Shown: piece after piece, positions 12,395 through 29,374 of the stretch
Position numbering within the stretch: position 1 is the first letter of the stretch
Layout: every line of letters starts with the position of its first letter
Assembly (NCBI GenBank): GCA_002269645.1
Contig: NIVC01004518.1
Location: 1 to 43,488, forward strand
Direction: 5' to 3'
From: Macrostomum lignano
Taxonomy: Eukaryota
Length of the DNA: 43,488 nt
Notes under the pieces: generated by a model
What the model was told of the DNA's origin: nothing
Databases searched by the model: none
Seen by the model: only the letters and a program-made list of their open reading frames with translations
Program-made: the position numbers and the translations under genes

Positions 12395-12930
12395 AGCAGA
12401 GAAGAAGAGGGAATGGAAGAGGGGGATGGCGGAAGGGAGAGGGAGAGAAGAGATGACGGTAGGAGAGAGTAGAGAAGGAGAGGTTGATGGTGATGGAGAA
12501 TGAGAGGGAGAGGGAGGGTATGGGGGAGAGGAGAGGAGAGAAAAAGAGAGGGAGATGGTGAGGGAGTAGAGGGAGAGAGGAAGGAGAGGAGAGGTAGAGA
12601 GGAGAGGGAGAGAGAAGAGGGCGAGGAGGGAGAAGAGGGAGAGAGGGAGAGCGGAGATGGAGAGAAGAGAGAGAGAGGAGAGAGAAGAGAGGGAGAGAAG
12701 GGAGAGAAGAGAGGAAGAGAAGAGAGAAGGAGGGTAGGGGGAGAGATGAGAGGGAGAGAAGAGAGGGAGAGAAGAGAGGGAGAGAAGAGAGGGAGAGAAG
12801 AGAGGGAGAGAAGAGAGGGAGAGAAGAGAGGGAGAGAAGAGAGGGAGAGAAGAGAGGGAGAGAAGAGAGGGAGAGAAGAGAGAAGGAGGGTAGGGGGGAG
12901 AGAGGAGAGAAGTGAGAGAGGAGAAGATGA
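12395..12930. repeat. GA-rich low-complexity tract with a 13-bp core (GGGAGAGAAGAGA)
   Basis: Almost purine-only + strand; regular 13-mers at about 12750-12880. Confidence 0.9.
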
Positions 12931-13241: not shown

Positions 13242-14063
13242 ATGCTCAGACAGCATTATCTTTGTCTTCTAGCAGCAGTGTCTGCTGTCTGCCTCTGCGC
13301 CGCATCTGACGCTGTTCTCAAAGCGGGAACGCTGACTCTTGGCGCCCTGTTGCCAAGTGGCAATGCTCAACTTCGTTCCGCATTCTATTTGGCGCTAAAA
13401 CGACGCCAAATAGATCCAAGTGGCGCCGTACAATGGCGCCTAGCTGTGGCAGACGCTGCCGACCCGATGGAGATCCAGCGAGCAATACGTCGCGAACTTC
13501 AAGACGTCGCCTGTCTCATAGCTGTAAGCAGCGAGTTGGACTCGATGAGTCACGTTGCTCATCTAGCTAAAAATCTCAGCCTGCCAGTTGTCATGGCAAC
13601 AGCAGTAGCCAGCGGAGACGCCGGGGGATTCTACATGCGACCGAGTCTGGCGCCAAAGGCGGCGCTGAAGATTGCGCTGGGCTTCGGATGGCGCCAGGCC
13701 GTCTATCTGGTTAACAGCGCTCACGGTCTGGCCCGGGCTGCTCAGGCGGCTGCCACAGCTGCCCGATCGGGACTCGAACTCCGGACTGTCTACTTGCCGG
13801 CGACAGAGGTGCCGCTACCCCGACGCTACTTGGATGTGCCTGAGCTGGACGGCAAGCACCGGAGGCGGGTGGTGGTGGATCTGGAGCCGGCGGAGCAGCA
13901 GGTGCAGCACCTGATGGCATCGCTGAGCGGAGCCGGGCTGAATAGGCGCGAGTTTCACTACCTGCTGCTCGACGGGGCGGCGGCGCAGCTGCCCACGGTG
14001 GGGCTGCTGTACAGCGGGGTGTCCGTGACTGGCCTGCAGCTGCTGGGGCTCGGGAGGCGGGAG
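13242..14063 (+). CDS. Ionotropic glutamate receptor (AMPA/kainate-like), exon 1: signal peptide and amino-terminal domain
   Basis: ATG at 13242 and hydrophobic signal MLRQHYLCLLAAVSAVCLCAAS. ATD-like motifs (LTLGALLP, GFGWRQAVYLV, RRRVVVDL, REFHYLLLD). GAG|GTGAGA donor at 14064; 274 codons, phase 0. Confidence 0.75.
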
Positions 14064-14223
14064 GTGAGACATGGACAGGTGTTGTGGGGCAGAGATCGAT
14101 GAGGGCCAAGCCCCAAGGCACAGGGAGTGTACATGTCTGACGATTAGAATGTCCGGGGCGCGGTACACTCTGAGTGAGCGCGTGTGTGAGTGTCTGTTTG
14201 CGTACAGCATTGGTGCGCTTGTC

Positions 14224-14704
14224 CCCACAATCCCCAATCACATCCCGGACACAATCCCCAATCACATCCCGGACACAATCCCCAATCACATCCCGGACAC
14301 AATCCCCAATCACATCCCGGACACAATCCCCAATCACATCCGGACACAATCCCCAATCACATCCCGGACACAATCCCAATCACATCCCGGACACAATCCC
14401 CAATCACATCCCGGACACAATCCCCAATCACATCCCGGACACAATCCCCAATCACATCCCGGACACAATCCCCAATCACATCCCGGACACAATCCCCAAT
14501 CACATCCCGGACACAATCCCCAATCACATCCGGACACAATCCCCAATCACATCCCGGACACAATCCCCAATCACATCCCGGACACAATCCCCAATCACAT
14601 CCCGGACACAATCCCCAATCACATCCCGGACACAATCCCCAATCACATCCCGGACACAATCCCCAATCACATCCCGGACACAATCCCCAATCACATCCCG
14701 GACA
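14224..14704. repeat. 24-bp minisatellite (CACAATCCCCAATCACATCCCGGA) filling iGluR intron 1
   Basis: About 20 near-identical copies running up to the CTGCAG acceptor. Confidence 0.95.
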
Positions 14705-14710
14705 CTGCAG

Positions 14711-15694
14711 GTTCGCGACCTCAAGCGCCGCTGGCAGCTGATCAGTCAGCATGTTGAAACCCAACAGCGGCAGCGCGAAGGCCACGGCGGCTCCTCTCCG
14801 CCTCCTCCTCCGTCGCTGCAGACGGTGGCTCTGGTCATGGACTCGGTGACCGCGGCGCTGACAGCAGCGACAGCAGCTCAGCTCGACCTTAATGCAGCAT
14901 CGTCGAGAACGACGACAGAAGCCAGAAAACGGATGCGGTGGCACCTGGCCAACACCGTTGATTTCGTTGGCTACACCGGCCGAGTCACCTTTCGCGGCGG
15001 CGGCGGTGGCAGTCAGCGGCGGACGAGTTTGTCGGTGCCGGTGCTGCAGTTGAACAGCCCGGACGGCTTCCGGCATCTGGACGATTGGCGGTCGAACTCG
15101 ACTTCGCGACCGATGCAGCTGTCGCCGGACGTTGCTCATGGCGGCGGATTCTTCGATAGCGGCGACGGCGACATCGGTGTCGGCTTCAGGGGACGCCGGA
15201 ACCGAACAGCAAAGTCGTCGCTGCGCTGGCCGAGACTCATCCGGGTGGTGACCATCGAGTCCAGGCCGTTCGTGCAGCCGAAAACTGCATCGTTAGCGAC
15301 AGCAGCCGATGACGTCGTTAGCAACGACACCGCACCGTCTGCGTCGCCACGTCGCCTGCCGTTTGAAGGCTTCTGCATGGAGCTGCTGGAGCGAATTGCC
15401 GAGCGAGTTGGCGGGCTGAAGTACTCGGTGCACCTTGTCCACGATGGTCAGTACGGCGGTAGGAACTCCAGCGCTCCGGCAGCGACAGCGGAGGCGGACA
15501 AGTGGAACGGCATGATCGGCGAGCTGCTTCAAGACACCGCCGATGTCGCATTCGCGGCGCTGACCATCAACACGGAGCGATCGAAGGTGGTGGACTTCAC
15601 CGAGCCGTTTCTCACCTTTGGCATCTCAATCATGATCAAGAAGCCGCGCAAGGAGAAGCCGGGAATTTTCGGATTCTTGCAGCCGCTGTCTCAG
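14711..15694 (+). CDS. iGluR exon 2: end of ATD and S1 ligand-binding segment
   Basis: CTGCAG|GTT acceptor and CAG|GTGAGG donor. Motifs FEGFCMELLERIA, VHDGQYG, KWNGMIGELL, ADVAFAALTINTERSKVVDFTEPFLTFGISIMIKKP, KPGIFGFLQPLS; 328 codons. Confidence 0.92.
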
Positions 15695-15885
15695 GTGAGG
15701 CGACGTCGTCTGCTGTGCTGGGCTTTGCATGTCCATGCTCACTGAGCCCTAGGTTTAACTGCCTAGTCGCTTTTTCCTGCTATCCTGCCAGTCCTCAGTG
15801 CTGCCCCCATGAGTGCCGCCTCTCCTACCAGTCCCCAGTGTCTAACTGCAAGTAAGCTCAACGGGTGCGTGCAAAAAATTTTTAT

Positions 15886-16625
15886 TAGATCTGGGATCTA
15901 GGATCTGGGATCTAGGATCTGGGATCTAGGATCTGGGATCTAGGATCTGGGATCTAGGATCTGGGATCTAGGATCTGGGATCTAGGATCTGGGATCTAGG
16001 ATCTGGGATCTAGGATCTGGGATCTAGGATCTGGGATCTAGGATCTGGGATCTAGGATCTGGGATCTAGGATCTGGGATCTAGGATCTGGGATCTAGGAT
16101 CTGGGATCTAGGATCTGGGATCTAGGATCTGGGATCTAGGATCTGGGATCTAGGATCTGGGATCTAGGATCTGGGATCTAGGATCTGGGATCTAGGATCT
16201 GGGATCTAGGATCTGGGATCTAGGATCTGGGATCTAGGATCTGGGATCTAGGATCTGGGATCTAGGATCTGGGATCTAGGATCTGGGATCTAGGATCTGG
16301 GATCTAGGATCTGGGATCTAGGATCTGGGATCTAGGATCTGGGATCTAGGATCTGGGATCTAGGATCTGGGATCTAGGATCTGGGATCTAGGATCTGGGA
16401 TCTAGGATCTGGGATCTAGGATCTGGGATCTAGGATCTGGGATCTAGGATCTGGGATCTAGGATCTGGGATCTAGGATCTGGGATCTAGGATCTGGGATC
16501 TAGGATCTAGGATCTAGGATCTGGGATCTAGGATCTGGGATCTAGGATCTGGGATCTAGGATCTGGGATCTAGGATCTGGGATCTAGGATCTGGGATCTA
16601 GGATCTGGCATCTAGGATCTGGGAT
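15886..16625. repeat. 14-bp near-perfect tandem array (TAGGATCTGGGATC)n in iGluR intron 2
   Basis: About 53 copies with only isolated variants (near 16505 and 16608). Confidence 0.95.
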
Positions 16626-16757
16626 GGCCCTACATGCTCACTTATGCCGTCCCATCCCTGACCCCAACTGAGCACAGGTGTGACCCTTCATGCTCACATG
16701 AGCTGCCCCATCCCTGACCCCAACTGAGCACAGGTGTGGCCCTACATGCTCACATGC
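16626..16757 (+). repeat. 56-bp tandem duplication spanning the exon-3 splice acceptor
   Basis: CCCATCCCTGACCCCAACTGAGCACAGGTGT occurs at 16651 and 16707; GGCCCTACATGCTCAC-like segments occur at about 16626, 16682 and 16738. Confidence 0.85.
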
Positions 16758-17219
16758 GGCGCGGGGGTGATTGCCGGTCTGCACCTGTGCGCCAGACTCA
16801 GCCCTGTTGAGTGGCGCATCTCAGACTCCGAGCAGCTGCAGGCCTGCAGTCTTCTGCTTCTGCGAAAGAGGCGCAGAGACTTCTCGCTGTTCAACTCGCT
16901 GTGGTTCGCGCTTGCCTCCATCGTCAACCAGAGTGTGGACATCTCGCCCCGCAGTTCAGGTGCCCGCCTGGTAACCAGCGTGTGGTGGTTCTTCACCCTG
17001 ATCATGATCGCTGACTACACCGCCATCCTGGCCGCCTCCCTGACCGTTGAGCTGCTGCGGACACCCATCGAGAGCTGGCCGGACCTGCTGGGAGCCCACG
17101 AGACCAGCGGCATGCTGTTTGGCACCATCGCCTCGGGCTCGACTCAGGCCTTCTTTCTGAGCACCAAGATTTGGCCCTACAGCGGCATCGGGGCCGTGAT
17201 GAGGAGCAACTCTGATAAG
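16734..17219 (+). CDS. iGluR exon 3: M1, M2 pore loop, M3 and start of S2
   Basis: CACAG|GTG acceptor and AAG|GTGCGG donor. Translation VWPYM...ARLSPVEW...[57 protein letters not shown]...[13 protein letters not shown]; 162 codons. Confidence 0.92.
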
Positions 17220-17362
17220 GTGCGGCTTGGTATTGGGGATTTGGGGTTGGGGATTGAGGATTCGGGATTGGGATTTGGGGTTGGGGGGGCCGGATTTGGT
17301 TTGATTTGGCGCTTTAGGGTTTTATAAGATTTGAAATTTGTGTATTCACCTTTTTACTACAT

Positions 17363-17806
17363 TCCCGTGAACACAACTGAGATCCCCGTGAACACCAACG
17401 ACATCCCCGTAAATACCAACGAGATCCCCGTGAACACCTCGAGATACCCGTGAACACCACCGAGATCCCCGTGAACACCTCGAGATACCCGTGAACACCA
17501 ACGAGATCCCCGTGAACTACTCGGAGATCCCCGTGAACACCACCGAGATCCCCGTGAACACCTCGAGATACCCGTGAACACCAACGAGATCCCCGTGAAC
17601 ACCTCGGAGATCCCCGTGAACACCACTGAGATCCCCGTGAACACCAACGAGATACCCGTAAACACCACCGAGATCCCCGTGAACACCACTGAGATTCTCG
17701 TGAACACCACCGAGATCCCCGTGAACACCACAGAAATCCCCGTGAACACCACAGAGATCCCCGTGAACACCACTGAGATCCCTGTGAAAACCGCTGAGAT
17801 CCCGTG
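17363..17806. repeat. 21-bp minisatellite (GAGATCCCCGTGAACACCACC) in iGluR intron 3
   Basis: About 21 variant copies, preceded by a G-rich tract (17225-17320). Confidence 0.93.
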
Positions 17807-17833
17807 CACGCGGAGCCCCGCAAACCCGCCCAG

Positions 17834-18103
17834 GTGTACGCGAGCACCACAGCGGCCGGAGTGCAGCGAGTTCGCGAATCCAACGGCCGCTACGCCTTTC
17901 TGCTGGAGTCGAAGATGAACGAGTTCCACAACAACCGCGACCCCTGCGACACCATGATGGTCGGGCAGCCGTTCGGCGACAACGGCTACGGGGTGGCCAC
18001 CCAGCGCGGCTCGCCGCTCAGAGAGCTCTTCAACGATGCCATCCTGCAGCTGAGGGAGCAGCAGGTGCTGGCCGAGCTGTACAAGAAGTGGTGGATTGAG
18101 AAG
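17834..18103 (+). CDS. iGluR exon 4: S2 ligand-binding segment
   Basis: CCCAG|GTG acceptor and AAG|GTAAAG donor. Translation GVQRVRESNGRYAFLLESKMNEFHNNRDPCDTMMVG...GYGVAT.RGSPLR...AILQLRE..VL..LYKKWW; 90 codons. Confidence 0.92.
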
Positions 18104-18271
18104 GTAAAGGTCGGGAGTTCGAGTCCGAGACCTTGAGCACACCTGGCTGTACACAAATTAAAGAAATCAAACTTATCGCATGAAACTGGGGTCCTGGGTT
18201 CTACTCCTACCTGTAATTACATGTAATTAGGGCACTGCAATTTGCACCCATGAGAGGCCTGTGATGGGAGC

Positions 18272-18350
18272 ACCGGTTTCCGTTGGCTCAGCTACGGCAT
18301 TCTTTGGGTCCAGTATCGCACAGGGCCGGAGTTCGAACCCCGCTACTGCC
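18272..18350 (+). mobile_element. tRNA-derived SINE-like head in iGluR intron 4
   Basis: A-box-like TGGCTCAGCTACGG and B-box GTTCGAACCC at tRNA-like spacing; the acceptor stem does not pair, so this is not an intact tRNA. Confidence 0.35.
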
Positions 18351-18391
18351 AGCAAGTCTCGATCGAGCTCGAACCCCGCTACCACCCACAG

Positions 18392-18634
18392 GGCCAGTGC
18401 GCCACCGACGACTCTGACTCGAGCGACGCTGGCCAGTCGCCGCTGGCAGTCGTTAATGTGGCCGGCGTGTTTTACATCCTGGTGGCCGGGCTGGGCGCTG
18501 CGATGGCCGCGGCGCTGGTCGAGTCCGCGTGCTCCGCGGCGATGCGGCGGCGGAGAAATCGGCGACTGAGGCGGCGGTCGGAGATGGCGGCCGGCTGCGT
18601 CGGGGCGACATCGGCGGCTGGCGTAATCATGTAG
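18392..18634 (+). CDS. iGluR exon 5: M4 and C-terminal tail
   Basis: CCACAG|GGC acceptor. Translation GQC...PLAVVNVAGVFYILVAGLGAAMAAALVE...RRRRNRRLRRR...GVIM*, TAG at 18632-18634. It supplies the second Cys of the LBD disulfide. Total protein is about 934 aa. Confidence 0.88.
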   Translation, partial: GQCATDDSDSSDAGQSPLAVVNVAGVFYILVAGLGAAMAAALVESACSAAMRRRRNRRLRRRSEMAAGCVGATSAAGVIM

Positions 18635-19225
18635 CTCTTTGGATCAGTTTAAGCAGCAGTTTGAGTAGCAGTTTGAGCAGCCTTTTGAGTATCAGTTTGA
18701 GCAGCAGTTTGAGCAGCAGTTTGAGGACAAGCAAACCACAAACCACAGCTGCATTACATGTAACTTCATCAAGATGCAGCATTGGTGTGCAAATCGAATT
18801 TCCCGACTTGAACTCTGCATGCTGTTTGCCGCATGTCAGACTCACCTGAGCTCACCACCTGACTGAAATTGGTCACCGCAGACTTGCAGTGCGACAAAGG
18901 GAGACTAAAGCGCACATGGAAGGGAAATTACGTGTGTTTCCCAGAAAAAAATTGAAGGCTGGCTATGATTGAAAATGAACTCCAAAGATGAGAATTCATG
19001 ATTTTGTGGTAATCAAAATGACAAAATCTTTTGACAGAAGCAGATTTAGTTATTTTCTTTTTATATGTCATATAAGCAACTGCATCATAAATTGTTTGCA
19101 TTACAAAAGTTCAAATGCATTCAAATTCATTAGAAATAAAGTAAAAATCTTGTTCAACAACGTGTAGTAGCATGCATTGTAATTCTAGAAATTTTTGCGA
19201 TAAATATACATGTATTCCAAATATA

Positions 19226-20504: not shown

Positions 20505-21205
20505 TCAGGATGCACTGAACACCTGCAGTCTCCTGTTGGAATCGTCAGCCACCACCAGCTGCTCGCGCGGACCTCCCGTCACCACCGCCAGACCCAGCGG
20601 CCTGCTGAATCTGCCGTCTCCGCTGACGCTCTCGCCCGGAGTCCCCAGAGTCCACAGCAGCGACCCGTCGTCTGCAGCCACCGCTCGCACTGAGTGACCC
20701 CGCCATTCACTCACGAACAGGCGGCCTCTGCTGTCGACGGCCACATCATATGGAAATTTAAACTGTTGGAGGTCGGAACGCTGAGTCGGGAAGGAGGCGA
20801 CCAGCTGCTGGGTGTCGATGCGCACTCTGTGCACCTGATTGTGCTTCCAGTCTGTCACCAGAATGCAGTTGTCGTGAGTCGCCAGGTTGCGCAGATCAGC
20901 ATGAGGAAGCTGAGACAGCGTGATGACCGTCTCCATCTGCCAAGTCGCTTTGCTGAATGCAGCAATTTTGTTTCCACTGGACACAAACACGAAGGCTACG
21001 TTGCTGCCGATTCCACCGATGTCACCGAAGGGCGGAATCGACGCACCGCACGACCGCTCAGGTCCGTCACTGTCACTGCGTCAGGCTGAGCAATGAACAA
21101 CAGCTGACGGTCGCAGTGAAGGCCTTCAATGTCCTTCTTCCAGTCGATGTCGCAGTGGCACCGCAGCTTCCGTGAGCCGTCCACAGACAGCACCAGTAGG
21201 TGGAT
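20505..21205 (-). CDS. NHL-repeat beta-propeller portion of a TRIM/brat-like protein (contains an apparent 1-nt frameshift at about 21030-21032)
   Basis: Classic NHL repeats (FKFPYDVAVDSRGRLFVSEWRGHSV; FSRPLGLAV...LVVADDSNRRLQVF). One extra C in the minus-strand CCC run joins AVRRFRP to FGDIGGIGSNVAFVFVS. Confidence 0.7.
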
Positions 21206-21238
21206 CTAGTTACTTTTTAAATTGAATGATGCAAGGAC

Positions 21239-22168
21239 GCAGGGCTGAGGCAGAGCCTCGCTGCCGTCTCGCGCTGAGTCGGAGAAAACCACACGGCCTG
21301 AGCGGTCACCAACGAATCCGTTGGTGTCGCTGCACACAGCCAGCCATTGAACTGGGCCATCCAGCTTCACCTCGTGACTGAAGACCATCGGATCGAACAG
21401 CAGTCTCTCTCTCTCAGCAGCGTCAATCTCCTCGGATGTCGCGGTCACCGCAGCCTCTCTCGACCAGTCGCCCTCTTCGCTGCGTCTTGCACAAATGCCG
21501 ACCAGCCGCTCGAGCTGGCCCAGAAGCCGCAGCTGCACCTCCTCATTGTCGCTCTGTTCTTTGAGCAGCCGCTCTGACCTCTCAAGGTCGGCCTCCAAGT
21601 CTCCAAGCGATTCGTGCATGGACTGGACCAGGCGAAGCAGCTCCGCCATGTCGCCTGCAGCCTTCGCCGTGGCCACCTCCTGCTTGTAGCTGGAGACGTC
21701 CTCGAGGTCCCGCTCGCACACACGCACTGCCTCAAGCACACCTGAGAGCTGGCCCGTCACCCTGCTACGAAACGAGTCGATGTGTTGCTGTACCAAATCG
21801 AATTTGTGATTGACCTCTTGCTGCTGCTGTTGGATGTCGAGAGCGAGACGACGCAGCGACTCAGCGTCTTGTCGGTGTCGCATCAGCACTGCACGGCTAG
21901 CTGCACCTGCTGCGCCCTGTGACTCTTGTGACTCTTGTGACTCTTGTGAGTCTTGTGAGTCTTGTGAGTAGGCACGCAGCAGCTCGTCGACCTCCTCCTT
22001 GAGCTTGAATAGATTGGCCACATCGACACTGAGGTGTTGACTGCACATGTGGCAGCGGGAGAACGGAGCCACACCGACTGCAGCTTGGTCGCAGATGATG
22101 CAGAGAGGAGTTGGGGTAGCGGGAGGCGCGTCCGAACTCGAGCTGTCGCTGGAGTCTTCAAGGCTCAT
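21239..22168 (-). CDS. N-terminal zinc-finger (B-box-like) and coiled-coil portion of the same NHL protein
   Basis: ATG at 22168 (MSLEDSS...). CIIC...RCHMCSQH is followed by a long heptad-rich helical region. The frame continues through a single TAG (21208-21206) that a 33-nt GT-AG intron (21238-21206) would remove. Confidence 0.65.
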
Positions 22169-22359
22169 TGTTAGATAGACTAGCAGCTGAAACACGGGTT
22201 AAGCAAAAAAGTTATTGATGACACATTAGACGAAGAGAAACTATGAGAAGTTGAGGATAAGAAGATAAGTAGGATAAGTAGTTAGCTTTGGGCACTGAAT
22301 GTCAAGTGTATTTTTAAATGCTTGTAGTCACACTACTTAGACGGTTCAGTAGTATAAAA

Positions 22360-23889
22360 CTAATCATTATCATCAGTGTCAGTATCGCGGGCTTGGGCAA
22401 ACGCCACAACCATGGGTTTATTGTGCAGCACACAGCCATGTAGAGCTTTCAATGCCGCAGTCGCTTCAATCGCGCTATCAAAGCTAACAAACGCTTGACA
22501 GCGCATCCGACCGGAAGTGAGCAGGCGAACTTTTAGAGCCGAATAGGGTTCGAATACTGACTCGAGATCCGATTGGACGACTGAACGGGCGAGATTCTTC
22601 AAGTAGAGCCTGTTGGCCGGCTTGCCTGGGCTGTAGTTGCGGAATGCAGCCAGCTGGGAGCGCTCCTGTTCACCTATGCGGCTCAGACAGGGAAGGGGGG
22701 CGGAACTCGGCGCGGATGACGGAACAGGAGCGGAAATTGGGGCGGATGACGGAGCAGGAGAGGAAATGGGGGCGGATGACGGAACAGGAGCGGAAATGGG
22801 GGCGGATGACGGAGCAGGAGCGGAAATGGGGGCGGATGACGGAACAGGAGCGGAAATGGGGGCGGATGACGGAGCAGGAGCGGAAATGGGGGCGGATGAC
22901 GGAGCGGATGGCACGAGCCGACCGAACCCAAAGCCAGTCTGTGGCACTTCCGGCGCTGGCAAAGCCACAGCCGCTTGGGCAGGTGCAACCGGAAGTGAAA
23001 TTCTGGCTGGCAGACGAAGTGCCGGCGGCCGCAGCTGAGGCGGCACCGACTGGGTGGCAGTCGTCGCACCTGCAGCGGTCACTGGAAGCAGAGCCAGAGC
23101 GGGCCGCGGCTTCGGCAACAGGTGCTTCCGGTTAAACTGAGCAACAGCAGAAACAGCAGCAACTCCTCGAGGCTTCTTGGCAGCTGAAGCAGCAAATGAC
23201 AATGATGAAGGGCACTCCTCTTCTTCTTCTTCAACTTGTTCAACAGGCTCAACATTTGCAGTTTCATCTGCGCCATCAGTGCATGCACTCTGCAGATGGC
23301 TGGCAACCAGCTGATCCTCTGCAGCCAAGTTGCCGCGCCGCAGCAAGCCGAGAACTTTCTTACGAAACCGGGCATCGTTGCGCAACAGCCACACAGCCTC
23401 GGAGGTGGCCGCTCGTTCGGCCTCTTCAGACGCCGTCCAGCCGCCGCCCCAGTCGAGACAAGCGGCTGCCGCTTGGCAACGGCGGGCAAATTCGACGCAA
23501 ACCCGACGGCCTGCCAGCAGCTCCTCCTCGTGGAGGCACTTCAACACCGCCTTGGCCTTCGCTGAATCGTTGAACGTGGCGTAGAAGCAGCCCGATAGGC
23601 GAGGATTCGGCGAGACGGCTACGGCGCCGAAACCGTCGACAAAGAGACGGCGAGCCTGGGACCAGGGCAGCTGGGCTGGCCAGCGCCGGATGTGCAGAAC
23701 TCGAGTGTCCGTTGCCGAGTCTGCTGATGCCTCATCATTGCGGATGCTGGAAGCTGCTTGCTGTTGCTGCTGATGATGTACAGGCGGGGGCTGATGAAGA
23801 GGAGGCTGCGGCGGCGGCGGCGGCGGCGGTGGCTGCGGAGGAGGCTGCCAAACCCAGCTGGGAGGAAGTTGACTGCTGTTAAAGCTTTG
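22360..23889 (-). CDS. RNPC3: U11/U12 snRNP 65-kDa protein (two RRMs); start codon on an unidentified upstream exon
   Basis: Open frame from a CTTCAG| acceptor at 23890, longer than the ORF-track call. RRM1 reads VLHIRRWPAQL...FYATFNDSAKAKAVLKCLHEEELLAGRRVCVEFAR. RRM2 reads FRNYSPGKPANRLYLKNLA...GRMRCQAFVSF...LHGCVLHNKPMVVAFA. The two-RRM layout favours RNPC3 over RBM41. Confidence 0.82.
   Translation of the reverse strand, partial: QSFNSSQLPPSWVWQPPPQPPPPPPPPQPPLHQPPPVHHQQQQQAASSIRNDEASADSATDTRVLHIRRWPAQLPWSQARRLFVDGFGAVAVSPNPRLSGCFYATFNDSAKAKAVLKCLHEEELLAGRRVCVEFARRCQAAAACLDWGGGWTASEEAERAATSEAVWLLRNDARFRKKVLGLLRRGNLAAEDQLVASHLQSACTDGADETANVEPVEQVEEEEEECPSSLSFAASAAKKPRGVAAVSAVAQFNRKHLLPKPRPALALLPVTAAGATTATQSVPPQLRPPALRLPARISLPVAPAQAAVALPAPEVPQTGFGFGRLVPSAPSSAPISAPAPSSAPISAPVPSSAPISAPAPSSAPISAPVPSSAPISSPAPSSAPISAPVPSSAPSSAPLPCLSRIGEQERSQLAAFRNYSPGKPANRLYLKNLARSVVQSDLESVFEPYSALKVRLLTSGRMRCQAFVSFDSAIEATAALKALHGCVLHNKPMVVAFAQARDTDTDDND
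22700..22904 (-). repeat. In-frame 30-bp coding VNTR in RNPC3 (PSSAPISAPA/V x ~7)
   Basis: GCGGAAATGGGGGCGGATGACGGA(A/G)CAGGA units keep the reading frame. Confidence 0.9.
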
Positions 23890-25159: not shown

Positions 25160-25890
25160 GAGAATGAAATACACAGGGGGAGGGTGAGATACATGGGGGG
25201 AGAGTGAGATACAAATGGGAGAGTGAGATACACAGAGGGATAGAGTGAGATACACAGGGGGACAGAGTGAGATACACAGGAGGGAGAGTGAGATACACAG
25301 AAGGACAGAGTGAGATACACAGAGAGACAGAGTGAGATACACAGAGGGAGAGTGAGATACACAGGGGAGATACACAGAGGGACAGAGTGAGATACACAGG
25401 AGGAAGAGTGAGATACACAGGAGGAAGAGTGAGATACACAGGAGGGAGAGTGAGATACACAGGAGGGGTGTGAGATACACAGGAGGAAGAGAGAGATACA
25501 CAGAGGGGGAGTGAGATACACAAATGGGAGAGTGAGATACACCATGCTTGGGCGCAACCTAGGGATTCACCCGGCCGTTTCTATTGGCAACACACACACG
25601 TAAGTCGCTATTGGACAGAATAGTAGTCACGTGACTGCTCTCAGCCAATGGGGACTTACATGTGTGTGTTGCCAATAGAAACGGCCGAGTGATTCCCAAG
25701 GTTGCGCATGTATGAGATACACAGGGGAGAGTGAGATACATGGGGAGAGTGAGATACACAGGGGAGAGTGAGATACACGGGGAGAGTGAGATACACAGGG
25801 GAGAGTGAGATACACAGGGGAGAGTGAGATACACAGGGGAGAGTGAGATACACAGGGGAGAGTGAGATACACAGGGGAGAGTGAGATACA
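25160..25890. repeat. 19-21-bp minisatellite (GAGTGAGATACACAGGGGA) in the last DDB1 intron, interrupted by a foldback element
   Basis: Direct periodicity on both sides of 25543-25710. Confidence 0.92.
25552..25707. mobile_element. 156-bp near-palindromic foldback/MITE-like element
   Basis: GCGCAACCTAGGGATTCACCCGGCCGTTTCTATTGGCAACACACACACGTAAGTC is mirrored by GACTTACATGTGTGTGTTGCCAATAGAAACGGCCGAGTGATTCCCAAGGTTGCGC, with central AGTCACGTGACT. No clean TSD. Confidence 0.75.
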
Positions 25891-25919
25891 CAAGGGTAGA
25901 TAAAGCAGACACACCGCAC

Positions 25920-26285
25920 CTTTCTCGTGAGTCCCTGAGCGACAGTCTCGAGTTTGTCGCGTCCCAAATCGAGCGCAGCTTCCAACAGATCGCCATCAAT
26001 GAAATCCTTAGCCGGTTCGGTCCTGTGCTCAGTCTCAAACGATCGATATTTGGCGTGCTCAACTCCGCCAACTCCGACTATAAGACTGGCTAGCCGGCGT
26101 TGCAATTCGTTGAGAAACTCAAACAGAGGCGGCGGTAGCTGACAGATGAGACCAACTGCGCCGCTTTGAGTAGCAAATAGAATTGGAGTGCTCACAGTGA
26201 CCAGGCGTTCGCCTAATTGGCTCATTACTAATGAGCCGTGTTGGAAAGTGTTAACTGTGTCGCCTAGGTGGTACCAGGCGTTCTC
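25920..26285 (-). CDS. DDB1: DDB1 exon (end of BPC propeller and C-terminal helical domain)
   Basis: GCAG|GAG acceptor and AAG|GTGCGG donor. Translation ENAWYHLGDTVNTFQHGSLVM...ILFATQSGAVG...FIDGDLLE; 122 codons. Confidence 0.92.
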
Positions 26286-26549
26286 CTGCGCGTGTGACGG
26301 GGTGCATTGCTTCTAAGAGATGATAATTGATCGGTAGTGATCAGTTGTAAGAACTTTAGTGTTGCTTCAAAACAGCTACATAGCAGAGTAACACAAAGGA
26401 TAGGTGAGAGTGACACACAAATTGATAAGGGTAGTGTAAGCAGAAAAGCCAGCGAAACACGCAGATCTAAGAGAGTGACCCACGAAAATCTAAGAGACAT
26501 GCAGATCTAAGAAAGTGACCCATACATAAGAGACTGGTACACGTAAGTG

Positions 26550-27680
26550 AGTGACGCACACGGATCTAAGAGTGACACGCATAAGAGAGTGACACGCATA
26601 AGAGAGTGACACTCGCAGGTCTAAGGTAGTGACACACATAAGAGAGTGACACACAGAGTGACACACACGGATCTAAGAGTGACACGCATAAGAGAGTGAC
26701 GCACACGGATCTAAGAGTGACACGCATAAGAGAGTGATGCACACGGATCTGAGAGTGACACGCATAAGAGAGTGACACACACGGATCTGAGAGTGACACG
26801 CATAAGAGAGTGACGCACACGGATCTAAGAGTGACACGCATAAGAGAGTGACGCACACGGATCTAAGAGTGACACGCATAAGAGAGTGATGCACACGGAT
26901 CTGAGAGTGACACGCATAAGAGAGTGACGCACACGGATCTAAGAGTGACACGCATAAGAGAGTGACGCACACGGATCTGAGAGTGACATGCATAAGAGAG
27001 TGACACAGAGTGACGCACACGGATCTAAGAGTGACACGCATAAGAGAGTGATGCTCACGGATCTGAGAGTGACACGCATAAGAGAGTGACGCACACGGAT
27101 CTAAGAGTGACACGCATAAGAGAGTGACGCACACGGATCTGAGAGTGACATGCATAAGAGAGTGACACAGAGTGACGCACACGGATCTAAGAGTGACACG
27201 CATAAGAGAGTGATGCACACGGAACTAAGAGTGACACGCATAAGAGAGTGACGCACACGGATCTAAGAGTGACACGCATAAGAGAGTGACGCACACGGAT
27301 CTAAGAGTGACACGCATAAGAGAGTGACGCACACGGATCTGAGATTGACATGCATAAGAGAGTGACGCACACGGATCTAAGAGTGACACGCATAAGAGAG
27401 TGATGCTCACGGATCTGAGAGTGACACGCATAAGAGAGTGACACAGAGTGACGCACACGGATCTAAGAGTGACACGCATAAGAGAGTGATGCACACGGAT
27501 CTAAGAGTGACACGCATAAGAGAGTGATGCACACGGATCTGAGAGTGACACGCATAAGAGAGTGACGCACACGGATCTAAGAGTGACACGCATAAGAGAG
27601 TGATGCACACGGATCTGAGAGTGACACGCATAAGAGAGTGACGCACACGGATCTAAGAGTGACACACACAAGAGAGTGAC
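26550..27680. repeat. 38-bp minisatellite (GCACACGGATCTAAGAGTGACACGCATAAGAGAGTGAC) in a DDB1 intron
   Basis: About 30 variant copies. Confidence 0.93.
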
Positions 27681-27686
27681 ACAAAC

Positions 27687-28088
27687 CTGCAGCCTTGGCC
27701 TCTCCTCCCCGCCAGAATTCTCCGACTCTCTTGAGCACACAAACAGATTGCCGCAATTCTCTGCACCCAGAAACGCATCATCGTCGATAATTTCAATGGC
27801 GAACATCCAGTTAGGCGCGTGATCTCTGGCGATCTCTTCCAGACTGGTTTCAACCGGCTTGTACAGCAGCAAGGACATGCTGCGTAGCAGGTCGCCAACC
27901 AGAGCGAAGTCGCCTTTAGTTTTGAGGTACAAAGCGATGATGTTGTTAAAGTGGGAACATTCCAATCGGAGTTCCCGTTCGTTTTCGCTCCATTCGAATA
28001 GGCGGACGGAGCTGTTAACGCAGACCAGAAGGCGCTGGTTGAAGCAGCACATTGAGTAGGGCGCGCCTCGGATCTCCTTCTCAGCTAC
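27687..28088 (-). CDS. DDB1: DDB1 exon (BPC propeller)
   Basis: GCCAG|GTA acceptor and CAG|GTTTGT donor. Translation [13 protein letters not shown]...NSSVRLFEW...[26 protein letters not shown]...EEIARD..PNWM.A.EI.DDD.FLGAEN..NLFVC; 134 codons. Confidence 0.93.
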
Positions 28089-28159
28089 CTGGCAGGCGGG
28101 AAATTGGGGAGCTGCTAGTGAGCTACAGCTGGCAATGATGGGGAATCTTTGCTTCAGAA

Positions 28160-28580
28160 AGAAGATTCTCTCAAATGGGGAATCCCAGCTTGAGGGAGAT
28201 TCTATCAGATTAGGGAAATCCCAGCTTGGGGGAGATTCTATCAGATGAAGAAAATCCCAGCTTAGGGGAGATTCTATCAGATGGGAAAATCCCAGCTTGA
28301 GGGGGAGATTCTATCAGATGAGGGAAATCCCAGCTTGAGGGGGATTCTATCAGATGAGGGAAATCCCAGCTTGCGGGAGATTCTATCAGATGAGGGAAAT
28401 CCCAGCTTGTGGGAGATTCTATCAGATGAGGGAAATCCCAGCTTGTGGGAGATTCTATCAGATGAGGGAAATCCCAGCTTGTGGAAGATTCTATCAGATG
28501 AGGGAAGTCCCAGCTTGAGGGGGAGATTCTATCAGATGAGGGAAATCCCAGCTTGAAGGGGAGATTCTCTCAAATAGGGA
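28160..28580. repeat. 36-bp minisatellite (GGAGATTCTATCAGATGAGGGAAATCCCAGCTTGTG) in a DDB1 intron
   Basis: About 11 copies. Confidence 0.9.
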
Positions 28581-28639
28581 AATCTGGAAAAATACGCTCG
28601 TAGTACACAAAAAGTTTAGGTAAATAGCAGAATCATTAC

Positions 28640-29335
28640 CTTAGTAAGATAAGGACTATCCGCGGTATACTGCAGCATTAGCAACCTCCCAGCAGACGGT
28701 TCAGACTCATTAGGCCGTATATAGCAGGTGCCAACTACGAAATAGGTGGCGCAATCGGTGCCAAACTGGCCAGAGGTGATACTAGTGGCAGTCTCAACGC
28801 AGCTCGGATTCGATGGAAACTGCATCGAGCAGAGCGGTTGCAAAGAATTCTGTTCTAGCACTACTACAGAGGTCACTTCGAGTTCTTCATCAACTTCGGC
28901 TGATGAGGCTGCGGCGACGGCGGCAGCAGCGGCGGCGGAAGCTACGGTGGCAGCGGCGCCGACCATCCCGGATGCGTGCGCATGATGCCGCTTGCCGGCA
29001 GCTGTGGCGGCTCCATCCGGGGTGAGCTGGATCGGGGCAGTGACAGAGACAGAGGCTCTGGCCGGAGCGTAGCCGCCTTCGTGGCGCAGATCAACCCGGG
29101 AGGTCACCACGGCAAGGGTGCCGGACTCGGGTTGGTGAGCCACTTTTCTAGCGGATTCGCCTAGCGGTACAGTGCGAATGTGCAGCTTCTGCATGTCGTC
29201 TATGGTGCCGAATAGTAACTGGCTGTTGGTTACTAGGCAGATGCACTGTTGCGGCTGCTGGGCATCGATAGATGCTGCTGATAGTAGTATAGGGCACACG
29301 TAATTCACTTGGCGGGTGTTCACGTGGGAGATTAC
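28640..29335 (-). CDS. DDB1: DDB1 exon (BPB/BPC) with an Ala-rich loop insertion
   Basis: ACCAG|GTA acceptor and AAG|GTAATG donor. Translation VISHVNTRQVNYVCP...LLFGTIDDMQKLHIRTVPLGESARKVAHQ...TYFVVGT...ESEPSAGRLL; 232 codons. Confidence 0.92.
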
Positions 29336-29374
29336 CTGGTTGAAGGATTTGATCATTTCTGTTTTTTATGATAG

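Follow-up and report, generated by a model that had tools for sequence, protein, structure and literature searches.

A predicted AMPA-class glutamate receptor gene of Macrostomum lignano with substituted filter and M3 motifs and a conserved gate lining

The stretch of DNA analysed here (43,488 nucleotides of Macrostomum lignano, contig NIVC01004518.1 of assembly GCA_002269645.1; in the following, the window) harbours at 13242-18634 of its plus strand a gene for an ionotropic glutamate receptor (iGluR) subunit. Its five exons encode a product of 934 amino acids (aa) in a frame without internal stop and are separated by four introns, each GT-AG and each phase 0 (Table 1). The product displays the architecture of the iGluR superfamily, i.e., amino-terminal domain (ATD), ligand-binding domain (LBD) with lobes S1 and S2, M1-M2 loop-M3 and M4, as evident from Pfam matches (ANF_receptor, aa 88-369; Lig_chan-Glu_bd, aa 451-586; Lig_chan) and from helices at M1, M2, M3 and M4 in an AlphaFold2 (AF2) model. 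Since the three Pfam domains score beyond their curated cut-offs, a chance open reading frame (ORF) can be excluded. A processed or decayed pseudogene was likewise dismissed, given 934 uninterrupted codons and four GT-AG phase-0 introns. The alternative exon 1 donor GTGTTG (after ...VRHGQ) was discarded, as GTGAGA at 14064 has the stronger consensus and yields the same junction length as in the M. lignano paralogue A0A1I8IHC4. No second iGluR copy was found within the window by tblastn with the gene model.

The glutamate-binding segments DGQYG, LTI-N-TER, SGST and LLES are in place, as is the cysteine pair DPCDTM/KGQC. Judged by the residues described for glutamate-type ligands (PMC6307864), R485, E705, G653, T655, Y450 and T480 all have their equivalents, and that of P478 is alanine in the window copy. 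This agrees with a first-pass annotation of the sequence, in which the binding residues were listed as intact and the frame as unbroken. The C-tail is short and Arg-rich, without likeness to the C-tails of vertebrate GluA subunits.

Table 1 Positions of the iGluR gene, its motifs and further features in the window
Feature	Position	Strand	Remarks
Exon 1 (start codon, signal-peptide-like N-terminus, most of ATD; aa 1-274)	13242-14063	+	ORF from ATG 13242; donor GTGAGA at 14064
Exon 2 (ATD end, linker, LBD lobe S1, pre-M1)	14711-15694	+	Acceptor CAG, donor GTGAGG, phase 0
DGQYG in exon 2	15443-15457	+	S1 of LBD
AALTINTER in exon 2 (aa 556-564)	15554-15580	+	S1 of LBD
Pre-M1 KPGIFGFLQPLSQ in exon 2	15656-15694	+	
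Exon 3 (M1, M1-M2 loop, M2 pore loop, M3, S2 start)	16734-17219	+	Acceptor CACAG, donor GTGCGG; carries the unusual motifs
M1 helix, 22 residues	16734-16799	+	Alignment; AF2 helix 156-176 of model
M2 pore loop, 21 residues	16893-16955	+	NSLWF...PRS
Selectivity-filter tip N-Q-S-V-D	16926-16940	+	Asn AAC 16926-16928 at Q/R/N site; Ser AGT at +2; +4 Asp
M3 gating motif DYTAILAAS	17013-17039	+	GAC TAC ACC GCC ATC CTG GCC GCC TCC
M3-S2 linker, 12 residues (GluA: LTVERMVSPIES)	17040-17075	+	Common to A0A1I8IHC4
Exon 4 (LBD lobe S2)	17834-18103	+	Acceptor CCCAG, donor GTAAAG; LLESK 17900-17914, DPCDTM 17939-17956
Exon 5 (S2 end with GQC Cys, M4, Arg-rich C-tail, stop)	18392-18634	+	Acceptor CACAG; stop 18632-18634
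M4 VAGVFYILVAGLGAAMAAALVE in exon 5	18458-18523	+	AF2 helix 427-468 of model
C-tail	18524-18634	+	Arg-rich (MRRRRNRRLRRRS), ending -GVIM
56-bp tandem duplication	16628-16756	+	2.3 copies, 89% matches (TRF); intron 2 3' end, acceptor, first 23 nt of exon 3
Minisatellites in introns 1-3	14226-14705; 15888-16625; 17364-17803		Near-perfect
Further minisatellites	12436-12924; 18645-18725		
NHL-repeat gene	20505-22195	-	Pfam E = 6e-8
ORF, RRM-domain protein	22360-23547	-	RRM_1, E = 1.5e-9
Exons matching CPSF_A	25656-29356	-	E down to 3e-26

Exon 3 aligns without gaps to solved GluA3 and GluA2 chains from FNSLWF through LTVE (HMMER, E about 1e-115 to 5e-115), pairing asparagine with the glutamine of the Q/R site, serine with the glycine at +2, aspartate with the aspartate at +4, and DYTAILAAS with SYTANLAAF. 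The filter and M3 residues reported in the first-pass annotation are hereby confirmed. Six of the nine motif positions match (Y, T, A, L, A and A are kept), and positions 1, 5 and 9 differ. Where an AMPA receptor has glutamine, editable to arginine, at the Q/R site with a Q-Q-G filter and the canonical SYTANLAAF, the window gene thus has N-Q-S and DYTAILAAS, and its asparagine is the residue typical of NMDA receptors at the Q/R/N site.

The frequency of these residues was surveyed by pairwise alignment to the nearest relatives of the AMPA/kainate class (filter, n = 186; M3, n = 189). At the Q/R site, 161 of 186 relatives carry glutamine (144) or arginine (17); asparagine occurs in three, i.e., A0A1I8IHC4 and one protein each of the parasitic flatworms Spirometra and Paragonimus, both kainate-like. 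Glycine prevails at +2 (175), with the serine of the window in three relatives including an AMPA-like protein of the monogenean Cichlidogyrus (QQSVD), and the acidic +4 residue is aspartate (135), as in the window, or glutamate (38). At motif position 1, serine (166) is followed by Y (11), T (7), F (4) and C (1), the aspartate of the window occurring in none. The same holds for its isoleucine at position 5 (N in 182, Q in 3, T in 2, one of them A0A1I8IHC4, G and S in 1 each), while its serine at position 9 is found in two relatives (F in 178). Across metazoan iGluRs, conservation within the motif is highest at positions 2, 4 and 5, and the glutamine at the Q/R site is far less conserved than the acidic residue at +4 (Ramos-Vicente et al., PMC6307864). 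Each M3 substitution is one nucleotide away from the respective codon of the flatworm consensus AYYTANLAAF. A 70-aa pore-only query for words of the DYTAI- or AILAAS-type was uninformative, with four scored candidates, all of them canonical insect-like fragments. In terms of sequence, the filter changes are not without precedent, as the sister gene and other flatworms show, and the combination of D, I and S in M3 has no precedent among the 189 relatives surveyed. Asparagine at the Q/R site together with loss of the motif asparagine, put forward earlier as atypical, is not confined to this gene, since the sister paralogue A0A1I8IHC4 (VVNQGID, AYYTATLAAF) has both.

Transferred to GluA2 numbering, the changed M3 residues are S615D, N619I and F623S, and their spacing (i, i+4, i+8) indicates one shared helical face. 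The bundle-crossing constriction seen in GluA2 structures is made by T617, A621 and T625. The equivalents of these three residues and of the Lurcher Ala622 are unchanged in the window. The side chain of GluA2 S615 points away from the pore (Yelshanskaya et al., PMC5430913), and in the glutamate-activated state S615 is the hinge of the B/D subunits (PMC12074995). In the GYKI-52466 cryo-EM structure, the collar pocket is lined by S516, P520, S615, Y616, N619, F623 and N791, with S615 supplied by the neighbouring subunit (PMC10705377). Four of these seven residues differ in the window (S516G, S615D, N619I, F623S), and P520, Y616 and N791 are kept. Moreover, one residue is deleted at the pre-M1/M1 elbow exactly at the exon 2/3 splice junction (15680-15694 / 16734-16742), the window reading PLS-QVW versus PLSPEVW in A0A1I8IHC4 and PLAYEIW in GluA; the following M1 is divergent and contains proline, histidine and small residues. 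The lining of the gate is conserved and the allosteric collar around it rebuilt. The initial description of a 'rewired gate' was therefore given up, since the pore-lining M3 residues are kept and the changes fall on the outward face of the helix, in the pre-M1/M3/M4 collar.

To collect relatives, 1.84 billion representatives were scanned exhaustively with HMMER (7737 hits). Besides near-identical copies, the only close relative is A0A1I8IHC4 with 62-63% identity over LBD and transmembrane domain (TMD). In a neighbour-joining tree of 383 trimmed LBD-TMD columns, both proteins group with 100% bootstrap within an eight-member, flatworm-only clade (100%; among others M. lignano, Cichlidogyrus, Dibothriocephalus and Anoplocephala), and this clade together with AMPA receptors is split from kainate receptors (GluK2 and GluK5 included) with 88% bootstrap. 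Of the phylogeny proposed in the first-pass annotation as a check, this tree covers AMPA and kainate receptors, and it places the subunit with the former. All 60 best matches in an HMMER search of PDB chains are GluA1-4, with no GluN chain among them. The AF2 model of the LBD-TMD part (mean pLDDT 81) retrieves only AMPA receptors among the top 50 Foldseek matches, the best being resting-state GluA1/2/3/4 with target-normalised TM scores of 0.85-0.89, and again no GluN. An AMPA-class origin by descent is well supported, albeit not final, as the tree is a distance tree sampled without outgroups from the Delta, Phi, NMDA, Epsilon and Lambda subfamilies.

Membership in the NMDA family, prompted by the asparagine, was ruled out, since sequence, fold and tree all point to the AMPA side. 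The earlier view of this asparagine as an NMDA-type residue is correct with respect to the residue itself. It does not make the subunit NMDA-like by descent: by these comparisons, it is convergent with NMDA receptors rather than inherited. Members of the flatworm clade share the M3 consensus AYYTANLAAF, in which tyrosine at motif position 1 is a mark of the clade, and the window gene departs from the AYYTANLAA- form. The sister A0A1I8IHC4 has in common with it the asparagine at the Q/R site, a residue other than asparagine at position 5 and the M3-S2 linker, so that the trend is older than the duplication. Sequence relationships indicate that the gene arose by duplication within the flatworm-specific AMPA-like clade. 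The further M. lignano paralogues A0A1I8HA92 and A0A1I8H4U7 have AYYTANLTAC in M3, and one of them carries a genomically encoded arginine at the Q/R site (FVRQGVD); the pore variants of the M. lignano paralogues thus form a graded series within one species. A profile built from the window protein and A0A1I8IHC4 revealed no further close relatives or orthologues from other species, using a word index that missed even A0A1I8IHC4 and the copy A0A1I8GU24.

The closest database proteins are A0A1I8J562, A0A1I8FHB0 and A0A1I8GU24, three unreviewed models from M. lignano, all of which carry NQSVD and DYTAILAAS. Where exons are correctly called, the former two differ from the window by about 1-2% of amino acids, and A0A1I8GU24 as the most diverged copy by ~3%, mainly in the N-terminal half. 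Two of the three also deviate from the window elsewhere in the protein, so that at least two are clearly distinct copies. The public models contain intron read-through, partial exon skipping and a fusion with the antisense translation of a neighbouring gene. Indel-type errors in the public models, as well as the position of the gene amid long minisatellites, could arouse suspicion of an assembly or sequencing artefact or of a mis-called frame. However, the odd residues result from five separate codon substitutions without any indel, they are identical in three other models, two of them clearly diverged, and exon 3 is gapless against GluA2/3. An artefact is therefore very unlikely.

All copies maintain the full frame over 934 codons as well as canonical splice sites. 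Comparison of the amino acid sequences of the window and A0A1I8GU24 yields 27 changes in 588 aligned residues of ATD/S1, versus two to three in 298 residues of M1-M4/S2 (Fisher p = 0.001-0.005), of which two belong to the M1-M2 loop on the cytoplasmic side and one to an exon end that was wrongly modelled; exon 4 is free of changes over 90 aa. In the antisense-translated neighbour contained in the A0A1I8GU24 model, about 9 of 330 residues differ, from which a nucleotide divergence of roughly 1-2% between the two loci can be estimated. By this measure, the N-terminal half is changing at an approximately neutral rate and the channel core is not. Such a pattern favours constraint on the channel core, and is still compatible with a very recent relaxation.

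The latter would apply to a redundant copy in a genome that has undergone recent duplication, with relaxed selection allowing the gene to drift and its odd residues representing early decay rather than adaptation. Several near-identical copies exist, the ratio of 27/588 in ATD/S1 may be set beside ~9/330 in the neighbouring gene, and motif position 5, which is among the best conserved residues of metazoan iGluRs (PMC6307864), is lost. A conserved APLTI has also turned into AALTI in the window copy; this position is polymorphic between copies (AALTINTER in the window and A0A1I8FHB0, APLTINTER in A0A1I8J562 and A0A1I8GU24). Drift is nevertheless considered unlikely, since frame and splice sites are kept in all copies, M1-M4/S2 is almost invariant between them, and the gene has stayed intact over 37% divergence from A0A1I8IHC4, a sister paralogue sharing part of the motif drift.

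Precedents for the individual substitutions come from receptors of other organisms. In GluA2, S615A, S615C and S615Y strongly reduce desensitisation and slow deactivation, S615A giving ~27-fold more steady-state current (PMC5430913). The human variant GluN1-N650I, the identical Asn-to-Ile change, makes both glutamate and glycine more than 10-fold as potent, with a deactivation time constant of 1753 ms (flagged as significantly different), a surface level of 0.76 of wild type and slightly stronger Mg2+ block; GluN2B-N649T, corresponding to the state of A0A1I8IHC4, and GluN1-F654C at motif position 9 likewise show gains of more than 10-fold in glutamate potency (PMC10973091). By analogy, these single-site precedents all point in the same direction, i.e., channels that still gate but are slower, of higher apparent affinity and less desensitising. 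As for the filter, an asparagine engineered into the NQR site of a placozoan epsilon receptor with +4 aspartate increased Ca2+ permeation ~3-fold over the native serine and conferred the strongest polyamine rectification, which depended on the +4 aspartate (bioRxiv 10.1101/2024.06.25.600656).

On this basis, the window gene probably encodes a working AMPA-class subunit that is specific to its lineage and in which both gating and permeation are altered. Its filter tip, N-Q-S-V-D in place of Q-Q-G-C-D with the +4 aspartate retained, would leave the channel Ca2+-permeable and polyamine-sensitive with altered handling of divalent cations. S615D, N619I and F623S, in conjunction with S516G and the elbow deletion, would reshape the collar on the extracellular side, by which M3 is coupled to pre-M1 and M4. 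Because single substitutions at the same positions of mammalian receptors weaken desensitisation, slow deactivation and raise agonist potency, the predicted phenotype is a slow, high-potency, weakly desensitising glutamate-gated channel that lacks the perampanel/GYKI pocket. The functional but atypical subunit proposed in the first-pass annotation is thereby retained, as the iGluR is intact and its core more conserved than its N-terminal half; the 'rewired gate' attached to it was overstated.

Several points weigh against a functional subunit of this kind. The public gene models for the copies are poor ab initio predictions affected by indel-type errors, read-through and fusions, the between-copy comparison was made at the amino acid level and draws largely on one sequence pair, and the rate of change in ATD/S1 is close to the nucleotide divergence of the loci, which could mean relaxed constraint. 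An orthologue in another species was not found by the HMMER scan described above. The window copy has alanine for the conserved proline before LTI, M1 contains proline and histidine, and an aspartate is placed at a tightly packed helix interface. AF2 confidence is 65-83 in the TMD of a model that covers LBD-TMD. Furthermore, three combined collar changes are not predictable from single mutants, some of them in NMDA rather than AMPA receptors; the functional prediction is an extrapolation from single mutants in other backgrounds, and is tentative as regards aspartate at 615 and G588S.

An obligate heteromeric or modulatory subunit was also considered, which would be incapable of conducting as a homomer and, like GluK4/5, GluN3 or GluD, would instead tune channels formed by canonical AMPA-like paralogues of M. 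lignano. Possible partners with more canonical pores are encoded by M. lignano (A0A1I8HA92, FVQQGID; A0A1I8H4U7, FVRQGVD; A0A1I8IHC4), and the changed face of M3 and pre-M1 is a subunit interface at which GluA2 S615 touches the M3 of the neighbouring subunit, so that aspartate there may require a specific partner. However, ligand-binding and pore-lining residues are intact, no sequence sign of assembly incompetence is apparent, and single mutants at the same positions do gate, making an obligate heteromer a rather doubtful alternative to the lineage-specific functional subunit.

Going one step further, one may speculate, with considerable reserve, that an AMPA-class subunit has naturally converged on NMDA-like biophysics by combining asparagine at the Q/R/N site with a remodelled M3 collar face. 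If true, the collar changes, including the change from N to I known as a gain-of-function disease variant of human GluN1, would be tolerated via co-evolved changes in pre-M1/M1, and a flatworm would possess a glutamate channel that is slow, permeable to Ca2+, of high affinity and weakly desensitising.

The DNA of the window is characterized by short exons and introns packed with minisatellites, the latter filling much of introns 1-3 with units of 24 bp x 20 (98%), 14 bp x 53 (99%) and 21/63 bp x 21. Because of them, both strands contain long ORFs that are spurious (e.g., the first ~180 codons of 14174-15745), and public gene models were misled. The 56-bp tandem duplication across the intron 2/exon 3 border provides a second acceptor near 16677, which was rejected as it reads GTG TGA (stop) and shifts the frame by +56 nt; this pseudo-acceptor could possibly be a source of non-productive splicing. 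Downstream of the iGluR gene, the minus strand encodes a protein with an NHL repeat and an upstream acidic coiled-coil-like exon, whose antisense translation is fused into UniProt entry A0A1I8GU24. It is followed by an RRM-domain protein with an internal Ser/Ala/Pro-rich repeat (APSSAPISAPV) and by several CPSF_A-matching exons, the introns of which contain tandem repeats. The CPSF_A matches assign these exons to a gene of the DDB1/CPSF160/SF3B3 family.

SYTANLAAF is regarded as near-immutable, and its substitution in humans leads to severe neurodevelopmental disease. A fixed DYTAILAAS in a well-kept AMPA-class subunit, together with the intermediate sister (AYYTATLAAF), represents a ready evolutionary series for studying the control of gating kinetics by the outward collar face of M3 and the second-site changes in pre-M1/M1 through which such substitutions are tolerated. 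Within the AMPA class, the gene is also a further instance in which Q at the Q/R/N site has independently changed to N. Divergent iGluR paralogues are common in invertebrates. The gene is chiefly a natural experiment on SYTANLAAF, and otherwise the expected kind of invertebrate iGluR diversification; its practical value is limited for now and depends on a demonstration of expression and function.

Compared with known systems, Trichoplax GluE1alphaA provides a precedent for natural variation at the NQR site (Ser), with the +4 aspartate kept, that retunes Ca2+ permeation and polyamine block; it differs from the window gene in belonging to the Epsilon subfamily, in the NQR residue and in being glycine-gated. 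Disease-associated and engineered mutants (GluN1-N650I, GluN2B-N649T, GluN1-F654C, GluA2-S615A/C/Y) carry identical or analogous changes at motif positions 5, 9 and 1, but these are single changes in mammalian receptors, mostly of the NMDA type, whereas the window gene naturally unites three in an AMPA-class subunit and has aspartate at position 1, where the GluA2 mutants have Ala, Cys or Tyr. With GluA1-4 it shares domain order, glutamate-binding residues, LBD disulfide, +4 aspartate, T617/A621/T625, the Lurcher alanine and N791 of M4; it deviates by Q586N, G588S, C589V, S615D, N619I, F623S, R628L/M629L, S516G, the one residue missing ahead of M1 and the divergence of both M1 and the M1-M2 loop, at an identity of 43-49%. 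The flatworm AMPA-like clade (Cichlidogyrus, Dibothriocephalus, Anoplocephala and Logan/MetaClust proteins) has the IMIA prefix of M3 in common with it, and Cichlidogyrus also S-V-D after QQ; these proteins possess AYYTANLAA(F/A/C), their Q/R site is occupied by Q, R or H, and D, I or S at positions 1, 5 and 9 occurs in none of them. A0A1I8IHC4 differs from the window gene by glycine at +2, tyrosine at motif position 1, phenylalanine at position 9, serine at the S516 position and an elbow free of deletion. Nevertheless, it is the closest counterpart, sharing the asparagine at the Q/R site, the loss of the motif asparagine, an identical M3-S2 linker, KKWWIEKGQC and M4.

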